The notes under the pieces were generated by a model. It made no database searches. It was not told where the DNA came from and worked only from the letters and a program-made list of their open reading frames with translations. Of a DNA stretch of 64,000 nt, positions 52,566 to 63,439 are shown in pieces. The number at the start of each line of letters is the position of its first letter. Within the stretch, counting starts at the first letter, position 1. The position numbers were made by a program, and so were the translations under genes. The stretch is from the sequence record MW879341.1; one strand, 5' to 3'.

Positions 52566-53441
52566 ATGAAAGTGAAGTTTGATGGTTGTTCAATTGAGTT
52601 GAAAACATTCGGATTCCCGGGTGGTGAGCGTCACGTTCGCCTGGAGAATCTGGACGACTACTTCAATGGCTGGGATCGCTTTCAAGATTCGGCGTCTATC
52701 GATCACGTAGAAGTGTTAATGGACTTCCGTGGTTCAGATGACATTGTAGACCTGATGTTGGTCACCGATGCTATCCGTCGTCTCCCGTTTGTTACTAAGA
52801 ACACAGTACACACGCTGGTCATGCCGTACATGCCGTTTGCACGTCAAGACCGCGCTGCTGAAGTCGGTGAACCGCACTCCGCAAAAGTCATGGGTACTGT
52901 ACTGAACCTGCTGGCGTATGACAACGTGGTTATTGGTGATGCGCATAGCGATGTCACTGGTGCTGTGGTTGACAACGTGCAGTTGGTATCTCAGGCCAAA
53001 CTCGTCAACCGTCATCTCGGTGGTGAGATTGTAGCAGGTGGTTGGGTACTGTGTGCTCCCGATACTGGCGCTACTAAGAAAGTAGACCAACTGGCGCAAC
53101 TGCTGAAAGTGGTTGATGTCGTACAAGGTGTCAAACACCGCGATACTTTAACCGGTAAACTCACTGGCTTCGATTGCTATGGTGACGTGTCTGGTAAGAA
53201 GGTCATGATCGTTGATGACATCTGTGACGGTGGTGGTACCTTCCTGGGTCTGGCACAGGTCCTGCGTGACAAAGGTGCTGTCAGTGTAGGACTGTTCGTT
53301 ACACACGGCATTTTCTCCAAAGGGTTGGAAGTGTTCGATGGGTTAATCGATCATCTCTACACTGTTAACGTGTGGTCTAACAATGCGGTAGCTACCCCTA
53401 CCAACAATCTGACAGTTTTCAAAGATAAGGATTTTAACTAA
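52566..53441 (+). CDS. prs: ribose-phosphate pyrophosphokinase-like protein (candidate NARP1 ADPR-PP synthetase)
   Basis: FPGGE, MPYMPFARQDR, DAHS, APDxGA, IVDDICDGGGTF. Confidence 0.9.
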   Translation: MKVKFDGCSIELKTFGFPGGERHVRLENLDDYFNGWDRFQDSASIDHVEVLMDFRGSDDIVDLMLVTDAIRRLPFVTKNTVHTLVMPYMPFARQDRAAEVGEPHSAKVMGTVLNLLAYDNVVIGDAHSDVTGAVVDNVQLVSQAKLVNRHLGGEIVAGGWVLCAPDTGATKKVDQLAQLLKVVDVVQGVKHRDTLTGKLTGFDCYGDVSGKKVMIVDDICDGGGTFLGLAQVLRDKGAVSVGLFVTHGIFSKGLEVFDGLIDHLYTVNVWSNNAVATPTNNLTVFKDKDFN

Positions 53442-55171
53442 TGCAGAACCTCGACCCGAAATACTTCACTGAAGACCCACTGGTATTCCTGCTGTGTGAC
53501 GCCTACAAAACTGGCCACATCAATCAACAGCCGGTTGGTACTCAGAGTTTCTTTGAAAACCTGACCGCACGTAGCCACACGTACTTCAACACCCCGCTGG
53601 ACTTTGACGGTTCTGTATTCTTCGGTATGCAGCGTCTGCTTCTGCGTTGGTTGGTTGGTAGCTTCTCGAACTTCTTTAGCAAGCCGTTTGATGAGTCTGA
53701 AGCCGAGTACCTTCAGTACATGGATGGTGTGCTGGGTAAAGGTGTGGTTAAAGCCGATCACCTGCGTGCACTGCACGAACTGGGTTACCTGCCACTGGAA
53801 ATCCGTGCTGTTCCTGAAGGTTCACTGGTACCTATTCGTGTGCCATTCCTGACCATCGAAAATACCGTTGACGGTTTTGGCTGGCTGACAGGTTACTTCG
53901 AAGACCTGTGGAGCAACGAACTGTGGAAGCCGTGTGTACTGGCAACCAAAGCACTGCACTTCCGCCGTGTACTGGAACAGTACGCTGCTGAGACGGGTGC
54001 AAGCCAGGGCTTCATTGACTATCAGTCACACAACTTCGCACTGCGCGGTATGTCTGGTATGTTCGACGATGCTAACAGTTCTATGGGTCAGCTGCTGTAC
54101 TTCAAAGGTAGTGATAGCTTCCCATCTATCTGGTCAATGAACCGTTACTACAACCTGGACAAAAGCGTCACCATCGGCGAGATCGCTAACTCCGTTCCTG
54201 CGACAGAGCACAGCGTTACCTGTCTGAACATTGCTGTCTATGCGAAACAACTGCGTGCCACTAAAGAGTACGCACTGGCCAGCGAAGACGTTGTACTGTC
54301 TAAGGCAGAAGAGATGTTCATGGCTCACCTGTTAGGTGTAGTGTATCCGTCAGGCGTGTTCAGTTTCGTATCTGACACCAATGACTTCTGGGACACCATC
54401 CGTAACAAAGCGGTGGCAAACAAAGCACTGATCATGGAACGCGATGGCAAAACTGTCTTCCGTCCTGACTCTGGTAACCCAACCCGTATCCTGGCCGGTT
54501 ATCGTTGGGATGGCGTACACTACGCTACCCGCTACGAAGCAGAGCAGAACGCTGACCTGATTCCTTACGAAGCTATCTACATCCACGATAAGTGCTATCG
54601 TATTGTAGAAGGTGAAGTGATTCCAGAGATCGACTACGAGCAACCGCTGGAGCTGCACGAAGTGAAAGGCGCGGTAGAGTGTCTGTGGGAGATCTTTGGT
54701 GGTGTGGTTAACGGAGCTGGCTTCCGTGAAGTCGATTCACACGTTGGCCTGATCTACGGTGATGCTATTACCCTGGTTCGCATGACCGATATCCTGAAAC
54801 GTCTGAAAGAGAAAGGTTATTGCAGCTCTAACGTCGTATTCGGTGTGGGTAGCTTCGAGTTCCAGTTCGTGACTCGTGACACCCTGGGCATCGCTATGAA
54901 AGCCACTGCCGGTAAAGTCAACGATGAGCACTACTCTATCGCTAAGAATCCGAAGACCGATGACGGTACGAAGAAGTCTGCGAAAGGGTACCTGCTGGTG
55001 ACCTATGGTGAGAACGGCAAGCTGGAACTGGTTGATAACCTGACCCGCGATCAGTACGAAGCCATGCGTGGTAGTGACATCGATGCAATGCGTACCGTTT
55101 ATAAAGACGGTAACGTGCTGGTCTTTGAAAATGTCAAGTCTATTCGTGAGCGCGCTGCTCAGTGGATCTAA
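53441..55171 (+). CDS. nadV: nicotinamide phosphoribosyltransferase-like protein (candidate NARP1 nicotinamide ADPR-transferase)
   Basis: DAYKxGH, PLEIRAVPEG, HNFALRG, SVPATEHS, RPDSG, GLIYGDAIT, FGVGS, FVTRDT, KxSAKG. Confidence 0.9.
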   Translation: MQNLDPKYFTEDPLVFLLCDAYKTGHINQQPVGTQSFFENLTARSHTYFNTPLDFDGSVFFGMQRLLLRWLVGSFSNFFSKPFDESEAEYLQYMDGVLGKGVVKADHLRALHELGYLPLEIRAVPEGSLVPIRVPFLTIENTVDGFGWLTGYFEDLWSNELWKPCVLATKALHFRRVLEQYAAETGASQGFIDYQSHNFALRGMSGMFDDANSSMGQLLYFKGSDSFPSIWSMNRYYNLDKSVTIGEIANSVPATEHSVTCLNIAVYAKQLRATKEYALASEDVVLSKAEEMFMAHLLGVVYPSGVFSFVSDTNDFWDTIRNKAVANKALIMERDGKTVFRPDSGNPTRILAGYRWDGVHYATRYEAEQNADLIPYEAIYIHDKCYRIVEGEVIPEIDYEQPLELHEVKGAVECLWEIFGGVVNGAGFREVDSHVGLIYGDAITLVRMTDILKRLKEKGYCSSNVVFGVGSFEFQFVTRDTLGIAMKATAGKVNDEHYSIAKNPKTDDGTKKSAKGYLLVTYGENGKLELVDNLTRDQYEAMRGSDIDAMRTVYKDGNVLVFENVKSIRERAAQWI

Positions 55172-56018: not shown

Positions 56019-56462
56019 ATGGTATCTATTAGACAACTGTCCGGACCGAGTGAGATGGGGTTGGTTTTACCGGCTCTATTAACTCTGGACCAGTACTATC
56101 CTAACATCGGCGATTGGTTTGAACGTAAGGTCCTCTCAGACTCCACAGGAAGCTCTGTAGCGATCGGTGCGTTTGAATCCGACACGTTGGTTGGGTTTGT
56201 TTTAGGTAAGCGTGGTGACGAGTCTAAGCTCCGCTGTGTGCGTGTAGCTGAATCTCATCAAAACTCGGGATTGGGTTTGAAATTGTTAGAACGCGGTATG
56301 GATTTGCTGGAATGCGAACAACCGCTGGTTACAGTATCCGAAGAACTGCTAGGACAGTACAGTAGGATATTCGTTAACCGTTACGGGTACTCACTCGACC
56401 AAGTAGTTAAAGGGGCTTACCGTCGTGGTAAGTTAGAATACGTATTTAATGGGGCACTCTAA
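56019..56462 (+). CDS. GNAT-family acetyltransferase
   Basis: KLRCVRVAESHQNSGLGLKL (acetyl-CoA motif A); likely start ATG 56019. Confidence 0.8.
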   Translation: MVSIRQLSGPSEMGLVLPALLTLDQYYPNIGDWFERKVLSDSTGSSVAIGAFESDTLVGFVLGKRGDESKLRCVRVAESHQNSGLGLKLLERGMDLLECEQPLVTVSEELLGQYSRIFVNRYGYSLDQVVKGAYRRGKLEYVFNGAL

Positions 56463-58123: not shown

Positions 58124-58639
58124 ATGTTACTCACTACTGATGACTATGTCTTCTTCTATTATGGGGACGACGTTTACAGTAACTTCTATCGTCAGAAGTT
58201 TGAAATGGCAGGACAAACGTTCTTCTGTTCCGAACAGGCGATGATGTACTGTAAGGCTATGTTCTTCCGTGATTACGCGACGGCTGCTAAAATCATGGCA
58301 GTCAATCCCGATACACGTCGTGCACCCTTCGACTGTAAGATGTTAGGTCGTGAGGTTACGCCGTACAATGACGAGCAGTGGGCGTCTGTTCGGTACGATG
58401 TGATGTGTAAGATCGTGTTGGCTAAATTCAGTTCTACAGATGAAATGCGTTGGCATCTCGTCAGGACTGGAAACCGTGTGTTGGTAGAAGCAAGCCCTAC
58501 TGATGTTATCTGGGGCGTTGGTATGGACGTAGATCACCCAGACATCCTAGACTCAACCTGTTGGCGCGGATTGAACCTTTTAGGTAATGCGTTAATGTGG
58601 GCTAGAGACCGTCTGGTTGACGAAAAGCGACTACCTTAG
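58124..58639 (+). CDS. NADAR (YbiA-like) family hydrolase
   Basis: SNFY, SEQAMMYxKA, KxLGR, LVEASPxDxxWGxG, GxNLLGxALM. Confidence 0.92.
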   Translation: MLLTTDDYVFFYYGDDVYSNFYRQKFEMAGQTFFCSEQAMMYCKAMFFRDYATAAKIMAVNPDTRRAPFDCKMLGREVTPYNDEQWASVRYDVMCKIVLAKFSSTDEMRWHLVRTGNRVLVEASPTDVIWGVGMDVDHPDILDSTCWRGLNLLGNALMWARDRLVDEKRLP

Positions 58640-59033: not shown

Positions 59034-59561
59034 ATGTCAAACATTACTCTGAAACTGATCACTGCAAACATCAACATCGCTGTAAACGGTAATGCTGGTT
59101 CCATCAGTGTCCTTGACGCTAACGGTAACGTTACCAGTGCTGTACCGATCATCAACCATCGCCCATACGACCAAGATCGTAAAGCGCTGGTGCGTGCTCT
59201 GTATGTACAGTCCTTCAACAGTGAGTTGGTGTTAGACGATGCAGATCGTGAACTGTATCGTAAGCTGGCTCTGAAGTTAGCTTCTGAAGTTAAAGACGCT
59301 GACAACGATTTCTACGTTGGTGAGTACTGCGAAGTTCGTGAAAACAATAACGGCATTATCGGCTGGGTTGACGTTAGTCGTCAGGGTGATAAAGTCGTTA
59401 GCATTGGTGTTGGCATGGAACTGGGTACAGACTCATGGACTCATCACTACGATGTGTCTAACGGTCCAGTACCTTTCAACGCACCACTGTATACCGATAG
59501 CGAGTTCTTATCGTTCATGGGTAAAGTGACTAACTACGCAATCGCTAACCAGATGTTTTAA
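59034..59561 (+). CDS. hypothetical protein
   Basis: 175 aa, AAGGA RBS. Confidence 0.75.
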   Translation: MSNITLKLITANINIAVNGNAGSISVLDANGNVTSAVPIINHRPYDQDRKALVRALYVQSFNSELVLDDADRELYRKLALKLASEVKDADNDFYVGEYCEVRENNNGIIGWVDVSRQGDKVVSIGVGMELGTDSWTHHYDVSNGPVPFNAPLYTDSEFLSFMGKVTNYAIANQMF

Positions 59562-59564
59562 TAT

Positions 59565-59606
59565 GACGGGACCTTCGGGTCCCGTTGTCCCCATGTTTCT
59601 TTTTTG
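59565..59606 (+). terminator. UUCG hairpin terminator
   Basis: GACGGGACC-TTCG-GGTCCCGTT, T-run downstream. Confidence 0.65.
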
Positions 59607-59658
59607 TAAAAAACTACAGGATGCCCCAATCTAATGTCTATCACTAAGGAGTACGAGA

Positions 59659-60018
59659 ATGAGCACAGAACTGTTAGTCGTCAGTACTATTACAGCATAC
59701 CACCTCCGCCCTGAGAATGTGGCCAAATGGCTAAAGGCTGAGTGTCTGGTCAACCATCCAGCAAACAGTTTGATTGATGCAGTTACCTGGTCGTCAAACG
59801 AACGCACGCAGGTCGTTCACTGTGAGGTCATTCTGAAGAACGGTCACATCTTGACCGCTGTCTCTCGTCCAATCGATCCAAAAGACTACCTGTTACAAAC
59901 CGGTCTGTCTGCATCATTCCGTAACGCTCGTGATGAGTTCTTTAAATATGCGGCCTTCATGGCCAAAGAGACCAACAACCCTCACTATTTAAAAGATCTC
60001 CCTAAAAACGCTGAGTAG
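59659..60018 (+). CDS. Gp49-like (Phage_gp49_66-type) protein, candidate nucleotide-signal sponge
   Basis: HCEVILKNGHILTAVSRPIDPKDY...G...A..NA matches the CxxxLxNGxxxxGxSxxxDPxxF...G...A..NA pattern. Confidence 0.6.
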   Translation: MSTELLVVSTITAYHLRPENVAKWLKAECLVNHPANSLIDAVTWSSNERTQVVHCEVILKNGHILTAVSRPIDPKDYLLQTGLSASFRNARDEFFKYAAFMAKETNNPHYLKDLPKNAE

Positions 60019-60023
60019 CAATT

Positions 60024-62027
60024 ATGATTCGTGATTACTACGACGAACTACAAAATCGTCTAAAGGGTTACAACACTCTTTACCATAACGGTGAATCTAC
60101 CGTCAGTGATGCCACGTATGACTCGTTAATGCGTACGTTGATCTCACTGGAAGCAGAGCACCCGGAATGGGTAACGCCGGAGAGCATGACGCAACTTGTG
60201 TCTGTTCGTGAAGCAGGTGATGACAAAATCCCACATATGTCCAAGATGTATAGTCTGGATAATATCTTCGATGAGGCAGAGCTAGTTAAGTGGTTGGCTT
60301 CTAAGAAGGGTGTGTTGACGCCTAATGCTCTCTGTACGTTAGAGTGGAAGATGGATGGGTTAGCCATTAACTTGATCTATCGCAACGGTGTTCTGGAAAC
60401 AGCGAGCACTCGTGGGGACGGTGAGGTAGGAAAGGACGTTACTCGCAATGCTGGTAATGTCATTGGTATTCCGTTGAAACTCAATATGGATAAACCGCCT
60501 GAGTTGTTAGAAGTACGTGGTGAGGTGTACATGCCTCGCCCTATCTTTGAAGCACTCAGAGAGAAAGCATTCCAACCTGGTATGGCTGGGATGTTCTTCA
60601 CCAACCCTCGTAATGCAGCGGCTGGCAGTCTGAGACTGAAAGATCCAGCAGCGGTGTTAGAACGTGGACTCGTCTTCAATGCCTACGGTGTGGGTACAGG
60701 ACGTGAAAATGTTCCAGCTAACTTCCAACACGAGATCTACTATTGGCTGAACCAGGTAGGTTTTGCAGTGTCGGCAGGGGTGGTGACAGTACCACTCAAA
60801 CTTGAAAGCATCATGCAACAGTATAACTCGCTGATTGCTGAGCGTGATCGCTTAGAGTTAGAAATTGATGGTATGGTTATCAAGGTATCTAACCTGAGGG
60901 CTCAAGACGACTTGGGCTTTACAAGTCGGGCACCTAAGTGGGCCATTGCCTTCAAGTTCCCAGCCGAAGAACGTGAAACCGTCATGCAGCACATTGACTA
61001 TCAGGTTGGTCGAACTGGTGTGATAACACCGGTAGCCGTCTTCGAACCTGTATCGTTGTCTGGTGCTATGGTCAGTGCAGCCACACTTCACAATGAGGAG
61101 CACATTCGTAAACTGGATCTGTGGTGGGGCGACACTGTTGTAGTAAGACGCAGTGGTGACGTAATCCCGCAGATACTGTACGCAATACCATCCTTCCGTC
61201 AACCAGATGCTAAACCGTTTGTGTTCCCCACTGAGTGTCCTGAGTGTGGTAACAAGTTGGTGAAGGTTGAAGGTGAAGCCGCTGTTCGTTGTCCAGCTAC
61301 AACTACGTGTCATGCTCAAGTGTTGGCAGGATTAGAACACTTCGTATCTCGTGGTGGCATGAGTATCGACGGTCTGGCCTATGCTACCCTCGCCACACTG
61401 ACTGACTGTGAGTTAGTAAAAGGTGTTGAGGATATCTATAAGCTCACGAAAGAGCAAATGGTTAGTGTAGCAGGACTGGGTGATAAGGTAGCGGATAACT
61501 TGGTTCGTTCTATTGAGCGCTCTAAGGCTGTACCGTTGGCGAAGTTTATCTATGCACTGGGTATTCCAGGTGTGGGTGAAGGAACCTCACTGCGCTTAGC
61601 AAAAGTGTACGATGACGTATTTACACTGATGCAGGCCAGTAGCGACGACTTAGCTAAAATACCAGACATCGGTGAGATGACTGCTGATGCTATATCAGAC
61701 TGGTCTCTCGTAGAGGGTAATGTGTCAATGATCCACGAACTTATTGGTTCTGGTATCCGACCCATCCCGCTTCCTAAACCGACTGTCACGGTTGGACCGT
61801 TTGTAGGTAAGGCTGTATGTATCACTGGTAGTTTCGCGGGTTACAAACGCGACGAACTGAAAGAGATCATCCGTATGTTGGGTGGTAAAGCGGTAAGTAG
61901 CGTGTCGGCTAAAACTGACTTGCTGATTGCTGGTGAAAATGCTGGCACTAAGCGTGAAGACGCTGAACGCCTGAAGATTGAAATCATTGACGAAGCGGAA
62001 TTTGTCCGTCGTCTCGAAGCCAAATAA
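60024..62027 (+). CDS. ligA: NAD+-dependent DNA ligase
   Basis: YH...VSDxxYD, KMYSLDN, EWKMDG, EVRGE, NPRNAAAGSL, Cys4 zinc finger, HhH repeats, BRCT (CITGSF). Confidence 0.96.
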   Translation: MIRDYYDELQNRLKGYNTLYHNGESTVSDATYDSLMRTLISLEAEHPEWVTPESMTQLVSVREAGDDKIPHMSKMYSLDNIFDEAELVKWLASKKGVLTPNALCTLEWKMDGLAINLIYRNGVLETASTRGDGEVGKDVTRNAGNVIGIPLKLNMDKPPELLEVRGEVYMPRPIFEALREKAFQPGMAGMFFTNPRNAAAGSLRLKDPAAVLERGLVFNAYGVGTGRENVPANFQHEIYYWLNQVGFAVSAGVVTVPLKLESIMQQYNSLIAERDRLELEIDGMVIKVSNLRAQDDLGFTSRAPKWAIAFKFPAEERETVMQHIDYQVGRTGVITPVAVFEPVSLSGAMVSAATLHNEEHIRKLDLWWGDTVVVRRSGDVIPQILYAIPSFRQPDAKPFVFPTECPECGNKLVKVEGEAAVRCPATTTCHAQVLAGLEHFVSRGGMSIDGLAYATLATLTDCELVKGVEDIYKLTKEQMVSVAGLGDKVADNLVRSIERSKAVPLAKFIYALGIPGVGEGTSLRLAKVYDDVFTLMQASSDDLAKIPDIGEMTADAISDWSLVEGNVSMIHELIGSGIRPIPLPKPTVTVGPFVGKAVCITGSFAGYKRDELKEIIRMLGGKAVSSVSAKTDLLIAGENAGTKREDAERLKIEIIDEAEFVRRLEAK

Positions 62028-62425: not shown

Positions 62426-62923
62426 ATGACAACGATTGTGTATCGTGATGGTGTACTGGCAGCAGACTGTCAGATGTTGGTAGCTGGGGACAGCGCTAAC
62501 CGTTACTACTTCAAGGGCACTAAGATCTACCGCCCCGCTTGTAAAACGCTCGTGTATGCTTCCACGGGTATGAACTATGATGCCACTACGCAGGCACTGT
62601 TAACCAACGCGCTGAAGATGGGTATTGCCGAATTAGCCGCCGACGGAATCACCCCACGCGTACGTAAACTGATTTATGAACTGTTTACCAAAGAGACCAT
62701 TGTCTGTACCAAGACAAAGGTTTACCACATTCGCAAAGGCGATATGGTTGAACTGTCCCCTGAGATTCCGTGGTTAACTGTAGGGTCCGGTACGTGCTTC
62801 TCAGGACTGGCCTTACAGAAAGGTTTAAACGCTAAAGCCTCCGTTGAGTTCGCAAACAAAATGGACGTACTCTCTGGCTTCGGTGTAGAAACTGTACTTT
62901 TAAATAAACTGCGTAAATCATAA
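62426..62923 (+). CDS. Ntn-hydrolase, HslV/proteasome beta-like peptidase
   Basis: N-terminal MTT nucleophile, GVLAAD, GSG motif, C-terminal AxxxD..SG. Confidence 0.75.
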   Translation: MTTIVYRDGVLAADCQMLVAGDSANRYYFKGTKIYRPACKTLVYASTGMNYDATTQALLTNALKMGIAELAADGITPRVRKLIYELFTKETIVCTKTKVYHIRKGDMVELSPEIPWLTVGSGTCFSGLALQKGLNAKASVEFANKMDVLSGFGVETVLLNKLRKS

Positions 62924-62935
62924 GGACTAACAGCT

Positions 62936-63439
62936 ATGTCAAACTTCTATCTGTTTAAAGGTAACAAGATCGCCATCACAATGGGCGGTTGTCGTTCCAA
63001 TGGTCTGTTTGCTCCAACTAACATCGAAAATCTGATTACCGCGCACGGTTTATTAATCCCGGTGTCTTCTAGCTTTATGAACGTATTGGACATGTTGGAA
63101 GACACAACCCCCGCTCCTGCCCGTGCTGTAGACAGTTGGTGCTGTAGCATCCTCGACTATGAAGGCGTGCTGCGTGACTTTTACGTCGATTCAAGTGACG
63201 GGGAGTCCACCATTAAATACGAGCGTCAGATGACAGGTCCTGGTTGTACCGGTGCGCGTTCACGCTGGTTAGAGGTAGAGGAGCGTGCTATGGCCTCATT
63301 GGCTCTCTGTGAGACTGTGGAAGAAGCGCTGGACCTGATCGTGCAACATAACGGCTACAAGCGTGAGTGGTATAAGATCTTCGAAATTCCTGAACTGTTG
63401 AAAATGATGGGAGCTAGCAAAGGTGAAAGTCGAACATAA
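62936..63439 (+). CDS. hypothetical protein, possibly an inactive Ntn-fold partner
   Basis: Same size as the upstream gene, similar strand and late-helix pattern (TVEEALDL), no N-terminal Thr. Confidence 0.5.
   Translation: MSNFYLFKGNKIAITMGGCRSNGLFAPTNIENLITAHGLLIPVSSSFMNVLDMLEDTTPAPARAVDSWCCSILDYEGVLRDFYVDSSDGESTIKYERQMTGPGCTGARSRWLEVEERAMASLALCETVEEALDLIVQHNGYKREWYKIFEIPELLKMMGASKGESRT

Follow-up and report, generated by a model that had tools for sequence, protein, structure and literature searches.

A divergent member of the Acb4 (PF13876) family encoded directly upstream of ligA in Erwinia phage pEa_SNUABM_54, and its possible role as a cyclic-dinucleotide sponge

Erwinia phage pEa_SNUABM_54 (MW879341.1) has a genome of 272.6 kb and Erwinia amylovora as its host. 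The window analysed here is a stretch of 64,000 nucleotides of that record, which it matches at 100% identity (record position = window position x + 124000). Directly 5' of the gene for an NAD-dependent DNA ligase (ligA), the window carries a short gene, here called gp49-like, whose product is annotated in GenBank as a hypothetical protein. A search of the record found this to be its only PF13876-like copy. Two metagenomic contigs, L003 and L007, carry close relatives and serve below to judge conservation. The features of the locus, in window coordinates, are as follows.

59563..59588, + strand: stem-loop with an 11-bp stem and a UUCG loop, followed by a T-rich run (RNA fold dG -17.8 kcal/mol, z -3.2)
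59596..59619, + strand: 24-nt T/A-rich element (TTTCTTTTTTGTAAAAAACTACAG) after the UUCG hairpin, invariant in the alignment of the window, L003 and L007
59646..59651, + strand: Shine-Dalgarno sequence AAGGAG, found by reading the sequence, 7 nt before the ATG and conserved in L003 and L007
59659..60018, + strand: divergent Acb4/PF13876 (N4 gp49) family gene pEaSNUABM54_00204, 119 aa, ATG start
59725..59967, + strand: Acb4-homologous core, residues about 23-103, delimited by HMM alignment to 9e4w_A residues 10-88, hhalign over 78 columns, AF2 secondary structure and the VIA-align range 20-115
60024..62027, + strand: NAD-dependent DNA ligase (LigA), 667 aa, with a Pfam DNA_ligase_aden match of 250 bits and OB, zinc-finger, HhH and BRCT domains

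The reading frame of the gp49-like gene is intact and its ribosome site is strong. The initial annotation had placed the gene immediately upstream of ligA, and its stop codon does lie 5 nt before the ligA ATG. No terminator was found between the two genes, and ligA is probably co-transcribed with the gp49-like gene. On the other side, the stem of the UUCG hairpin is conserved in the alignment with both relatives. The stem-loop probably terminates the upstream gene, so that a new transcription unit would begin after it; as it occurs once in the window, a repeated element was rejected. A scan for consensus promoters and terminators returned nothing specific near the gp49-like gene, and the stem-loop is absent from its list. 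The 24-nt element, which also occurs once in the window, is unchanged in the three phages despite near-saturated synonymous sites in the gp49-like gene (dS about 2), and may serve the gp49-like/ligA unit as a promoter or 5' leader element. From this arrangement we infer an order of terminator, promoter or leader, gp49-like gene and ligA.

As is common for Acb4 family genes, several genes around the locus may counter host defence. The genes of this context that lie upstream in the window are listed here.

52566-53441, + strand: PRPS-like gene, with Pribosyl_synth and Pribosyltran matches
53441-55171, + strand: NAMPT/NAPRTase-like gene, 576 aa, directly after the PRPS-like gene
56019-56462, + strand: GNAT-family acetyltransferase (Acetyltransf_1, E 1.2e-5), between the preceding pair and the NADAR gene
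58124-58639, + strand: NADAR-domain protein (139.5 bits), 1 kb upstream of the gp49-like gene

The PRPS-like and NAMPT-like genes lie 4.5-7 kb upstream of the gp49-like gene and are found as a pair in L003 and L007 as well. The NAD+ reconstitution pathway NARP1 consists of Adps and Namat, and the order of the two genes is, judged from sequence, that of the gene pair expected for NARP1, so that we refer to the pair as NARP1-like. The NADAR protein may reverse ADP-ribosylation as a counter-defence. Its sequence is also a match to PDC-M42C, a candidate model in PADLOC (E 1e-36), and it has counterparts of 60-95% identity in all four contigs compared here. An Acb1 protein of 155 aa, by its Pfam match an anti-CBASS phosphodiesterase (PF23474, 52.8 bits, E 4.6e-14), is encoded 3.1 kb beyond the window end, at positions 191128-191595 of record MW879341.1 (L001:15129-15596). 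The distance from the gp49-like gene to Acb1, to the NARP1-like pair and to NADAR is in each case no more than about 8 kb. According to a published survey, no counter-defence genes are commoner in Erwinia phages than acb1 and NARP1, and some E. amylovora strains carry CBASS type I. NARP1 and acb1 are reported as strongly anti-correlated among Erwinia phages, with a rho of -0.85 (PMC13480210); pEa_SNUABM_54 seems, by Pfam-level evidence, to carry both. Downstream of ligA, two adjacent genes for proteins of 165 and 167 aa (62426-63439, + strand) gave no Pfam match at E up to 0.01, and their products are 30-35% identical to those of distant relatives.

The initial annotation had drawn a link between the Gp49-like family and the CBASS sponge Acb4, and the literature bears it out: SPO1 Acb4 (PDB 9E4W) belongs to PF13876, a family of 1,331 homologs (bioRxiv 10.1101/2024.12.30.630793). 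Searches with the single sequence reach this family with difficulty. The direct match to PF13876 scores 20.9 bits (E 5e-4, HMM positions 22-79 of 82) against a Pfam gathering score of 27, which is a curation threshold and not a biological feature, and phrog_322 is matched at E 2.6e-7. Single-sequence phmmer against the PDB gave nothing at E up to 10, and PADLOC gave nothing for this protein. Relatives are few. A word-index protein search returned only two, of 91% and 80% identity, and when 1.84 billion representatives were scanned exhaustively with HMMER, the six hits added only P0003 (35%), P0004 (28%) and P0007 as new relatives; P0005 and P0006, being rich in repeats and devoid of any PF13876 signal, were treated as spurious. 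Scanning IMG/VR with the alignment yielded one weak locus, L009, which was set aside. The close relatives score 23.3-23.5 bits against PF13876 and P0003 scores 19.2, while P0004 passes the cut-off at 30.8 and P0007 reaches 88.5 bits; phmmer links the gp49-like protein to P0007 at E 7.5e-4.

Profiles bring the relationship out more clearly. A five-member subfamily profile that contains no canonical member has SPO1 Acb4 as its best PDB match (9e4w_A, E 4.6e-5, about 80 residues), and adding P0007 to the profile takes this to E 6e-8 with the register unchanged. Aligned by hhalign to seven canonical members (P0007 and proteins of Moo19, phiEaP-8, epsilon15, phiPA1-3, KP8 and VP17802), the subfamily matches over 78 columns (probability 97.3%, E 2.2e-11). 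The best ten named clusters in the ESM-Atlas, which compares language-model features, are all PF13876, with the top three scoring 0.92-0.93. In a 12-sequence alignment with canonical members, the core residues C55, S69 and G82 are invariant and A90 is nearly so. Matched by tblastn with a canonical PF13876 member were 556 phage records, 18 of them from Erwinia phages; the gp49-like protein is absent among the Erwinia entries in the accessible part of the published 1,331-homolog table.

The AlphaFold2 model, predicted from a shallow alignment of six sequences (pLDDT 84, pTM 0.77), begins with a short strand, which is followed by two helices, three strands, a long helix and, at the C-terminus, a short one (H18-27, H34-38, E39-47, E53-59, E64-69, H79-105, H110-117). 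Apart from the first strand, these agree with the elements of an Acb4 protomer: N-terminal helices, three antiparallel strands, an extended beta3-alpha4 loop, alpha4 and alpha5. The Acb4-homologous core takes in the helices, the three beta strands, the beta3-alpha4 loop (S69-T81) and the long helix alpha4. A different predicted fold had been named as evidence against a Gp49-like protein, and what the model resembles is Acb4. The top ten Foldseek matches are all chains of 9E4W (probability 0.99-1.00, with E values of only about 1e-2), and VIA-align gives 9E4W a Z of 9.7 (rmsd 3.0 over 87 residues), the next entry having Z 5.6. A search independent of Foldseek, against 48,161 representative chains, found 9e4w_A at Z 8.8 as the sole hit with Z of at least 8. 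Weaker structural matches (Z 4-5.6) are release-factor domains, ribosome hibernation factors and dsRBDs; the same three kinds of fold neighbour, dsRNA-binding domains among them, are listed for Acb4 by its authors (bioRxiv 10.1101/2024.12.30.630793). On this model, the gp49-like protein is predicted to have the Acb4 fold. Since the profile searches, the profile-profile comparison, the predicted fold and the language-model features all lead to the same place, we assign the protein with great confidence to the Acb4 family, on homology and shared fold, as a divergent member. It represents a small divergent subfamily, missed by the Pfam cut-off, of a known and well-studied family.

The sequence motif on which the assignment had first been made is present for the most part: C55-x3-L59KNG62, S69-x3-D73P74-x2-Y77, G82 and N89A90 are all found, and only the spacing of the remaining alanine needs correction, as it lies at A85 and gives A-x3-NA instead of A-x2-NA. 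Two departures from the canonical pattern were also read correctly. 'TAVS' (T66-S69) replaces G-x-S, and there is no LEGY, the sequence 'KYAAF' (96-100) standing where canonical Gram-negative members have x-L-E-G-Y. The initial annotation took these departures to mean that the protein may bind a different signal. They are weak grounds for this, because A67, the residue behind 'TAVS', is private to pEa_SNUABM_54, the glycine being kept in the 91% and 80% relatives; because SPO1 Acb4 likewise does without LEGY and has K-F-L-A-Y opposite K-Y-A-A-F; and because neither position contacts the ligand in 9E4W. An altered ligand may still be proposed, on pocket differences elsewhere, at H63 and R70-P71.

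The pocket was compared with that of SPO1 Acb4 by mapping the contact list of the Acb4 paper through the HMM alignment to 9E4W (chain index = residue number + 1). The ten SPO1 contacts and their counterparts in the gp49-like protein are given below.

K36 (guanine-reading): Q51
F48 (stacking): H63
E49 (guanine-reading): I64
V56: P71
Y57: I72
F62: Y77
N63 (backbone contact): L78
I66: T81
T70: A85
K81 (phosphate-contacting): K96, identical

Only the last of the ten contacts is thus identical. Canonical Gram-negative members are likewise without K36 and E49, and 3'3'-cGAMP was bound by all eight of the Acb4 homologs tested, with 3'3'-cAA bound too by those from phages of Gram-negative hosts (bioRxiv 10.1101/2024.12.30.630793). 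For c-di-AMP, the Kd of N4 Acb4 is 111 nM. As canonical binders also lack K36 and E49, the lost SPO1 contacts are no argument against binding of cyclic dinucleotides.

Two changes are invariant in the subfamily: H63 replaces the conserved aromatic residue after N-G, and S-R-P (R70-P71) replaces S-A-C in the pocket loop. These residues lie in or beside the pocket-forming elements and, together with the absence of the base-specific contacts of SPO1 Acb4, they would fit a protein of the same fold and sponge mechanism in a subfamily re-tuned to a ligand other than the usual CBASS dinucleotides, with the NAD-derived Thoeris signals gcADPR and His-ADPR, cyclic trinucleotides and 2'3'-cAA as candidates. 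The NAD-centred neighbours (the NARP1-like pair, NADAR and the NAD-dependent ligase) would fit as well, as would the fact that cGAMP-type signals are already handled by the phage's Acb1. However, pocket residues vary widely among members that all bind 3'3'-cGAMP, and synteny is inherited region-wide, so that the neighbours say little on the ligand. Moreover, there is no report of a PF13876 member whose Acb4 domain itself binds an ADPR-derived signal; gcADPR binding by the Ab09 fusion is ascribed to its Sequestin part. We consider a change of ligand unlikely on this balance, if worth keeping in view. It is quite unlikely, in our estimate, that in the jumbo-phage 'S-R-P / His' subfamily the Acb4 pocket, with its invariant H63, R70, P71 and R91, has been re-tuned to sequester a signal other than the usual CBASS dinucleotides, for example an NAD-derived one of the Thoeris type. 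If true, this would be the first ligand-class change within the Acb4 fold, and the gp49-like gene, the NARP1-like pair, NADAR and the NAD-dependent ligase would form an NAD-centred counter-defence island.

The position of the gene next to ligA has to be weighed against its wider context. In the metagenomic contigs L003, L004, L005 and L007, as in the window, NADAR is followed by one or two small genes, then by the gp49-like gene, LigA and more small genes. Two of these contigs are distant (LigA 52-55% identical), and the gap between the gp49-like gene and ligA is 2-9 nt in all five phages. This tight and conserved coupling could point to another, nucleic-acid-linked role, in which the protein would be no sponge and would instead be a dsRBD/YfiA-like nucleic-acid-binding or ligase-accessory protein working with LigA in replication or repair. 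Its place directly 5' of ligA in all five phages, even where LigA is only 52-55% identical, agrees with such a role, as does the kinship of the Acb4 fold with dsRNA-binding domains, ribosome hibernation factors and release-factor domains. Yet the whole 10-kb region is collinear in the related phages, and for this reason the ligA neighbourhood is most simply inherited gene order; we judged the adjacency weak as a sign of functional linkage. The match to Acb4 (Z 8.8-9.7 together with sequence homology) stands far above that to any nucleic-acid binder, and canonical members occur in phages without LigA. No member of the Acb4 family is known to bind DNA or RNA. A ligase-accessory role is in our view very unlikely.

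The gp49-like gene is under purifying selection, with dN/dS values of 0.03 and 0.15 against the two close relatives (0.05 for LigA), and has been kept in five phages, whose proteins share 20 invariant positions although identity falls to 28%. A decaying or functionless Acb4 remnant might be suspected from the Pfam score under the cut-off and from the loss of the G-x-S glycine to A67 in pEa_SNUABM_54 only. Against this stand the low dN/dS, the retention of the gene with its invariant positions, the intact frame and strong ribosome site, and the confident fold prediction, which together make a remnant extremely improbable. Faster evolution than that of the neighbouring genes, a sign of an arms race, was considered and rejected. 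The long-range divergence of the gp49-like protein is like that of its small neighbours (28-34% vs 30-43% identity) and the short-range pattern is a mosaic: in L003 the gp49-like protein is 91% identical and LigA 73%, while in L007 the figures are 80% for the gp49-like protein, 91% for LigA and 95% for NADAR. The mosaic suggests recombination, with breakpoints around the gp49-like gene. Just 5' of it, a gene for 175 aa (59034-59561, + strand) marks a variable slot. It has no called counterpart or blastp match in L007, and its protein, which has no Pfam match, is 27-30% identical in distant relatives.

We favour the reading that the gp49-like protein is a divergent Acb4 member acting as an oligomeric sponge for cyclic dinucleotides, and give this statement as a whole a probability of about 0.6. 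By analogy with the Acb4 proteins of SPO1, N4 and Ab09, the 119-aa protein would form a homo-oligomer, expected to be a tetramer like the pinwheel assembly of Acb4, with pockets between subunits made up of the beta3-alpha4 loop of one subunit and alpha4/alpha5 of another. These pockets would sequester the cyclic-dinucleotide signals made by host CBASS-type cyclases, and the effector would never be switched on. We infer from these family members that the protein oligomerises and binds a ligand, and likewise what that ligand would be. The gene would open a transcription unit that runs into the NAD-dependent ligase, and the sponge would be made early, with the ligase. It would complement the Acb1 nuclease and act beside the NARP1-like pair for rebuilding NAD+; T4 likewise combines Acb1 with Acb2. 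Many sponge pockets are basic, and the near-neutral charge of the gp49-like protein (pI about 7) counts against the sponge reading.

With this protein, the phage appears to stack counters to signalling and NAD-depleting defences: Acb1, an Acb4-like sponge, NARP1-like rebuilding of NAD+ and NADAR. Such stacked counter-measures matter when phages are chosen for fire-blight biocontrol, and for predicting which guard systems (Panoptes, PanDA) would detect such phages. The PF13876 family extends beyond what the Pfam cut-off captures, into a clade of giant Erwinia-type phages in which the product of the gene is labelled hypothetical. The altered pocket of the subfamily offers a natural test case for the evolution of sponge specificity. 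The known picture of how sponges work is left unchanged by the gp49-like gene.

Among the closest known systems is SPO1 Acb4 (9E4W), the founding member of PF13876. Both are small phage proteins of a common fold (VIA-align Z 8.8-9.7), with about 80 residues aligned and no indels in the beta3-alpha4 pocket loop. C55, S69, G82, D92 and K96 correspond to SPO1 C40, S54, G67, D77 and K81, and the K-Y-A-A-F at the end of alpha4 resembles the K-F-L-A-Y of SPO1. The two differ in that identity is about 18% and nine of the ten ligand contacts are changed, and in that the gp49-like protein is 23 residues longer and has an additional beta strand near its N-terminus (residues 11-16). With the canonical Acb4 proteins of phages of Gram-negative, partly Erwinia, hosts (N4, Bas69, Moo19, KP8, Erwinia phiEaP-8 and Frozen), the gp49-like protein shares the pattern C-x3-L-x-N-G ... 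S ... D-P-x2-[FY] ... G ... N-A. Where these have F/Y/W after N-G, S-A-C and W-x-L-E-G-Y, however, it has His, S-R-P and F-K-Y-A-A-F. Many of them carry a C-terminal Cys-rich tail or fused Sequestin/Tad2 domains, which the gp49-like protein does not, and they are located in the N4-like anti-signalling hot spot and not beside a ligase. Acb2, Tad1, Tad2 and Sequestin have unrelated folds, and none was among the structural matches from Foldseek, VIA-align or the 48,161-chain search; the likeness to these sponges lies in the expected action, by analogy that of a short homo-oligomeric phage protein with pockets at its subunit interfaces.
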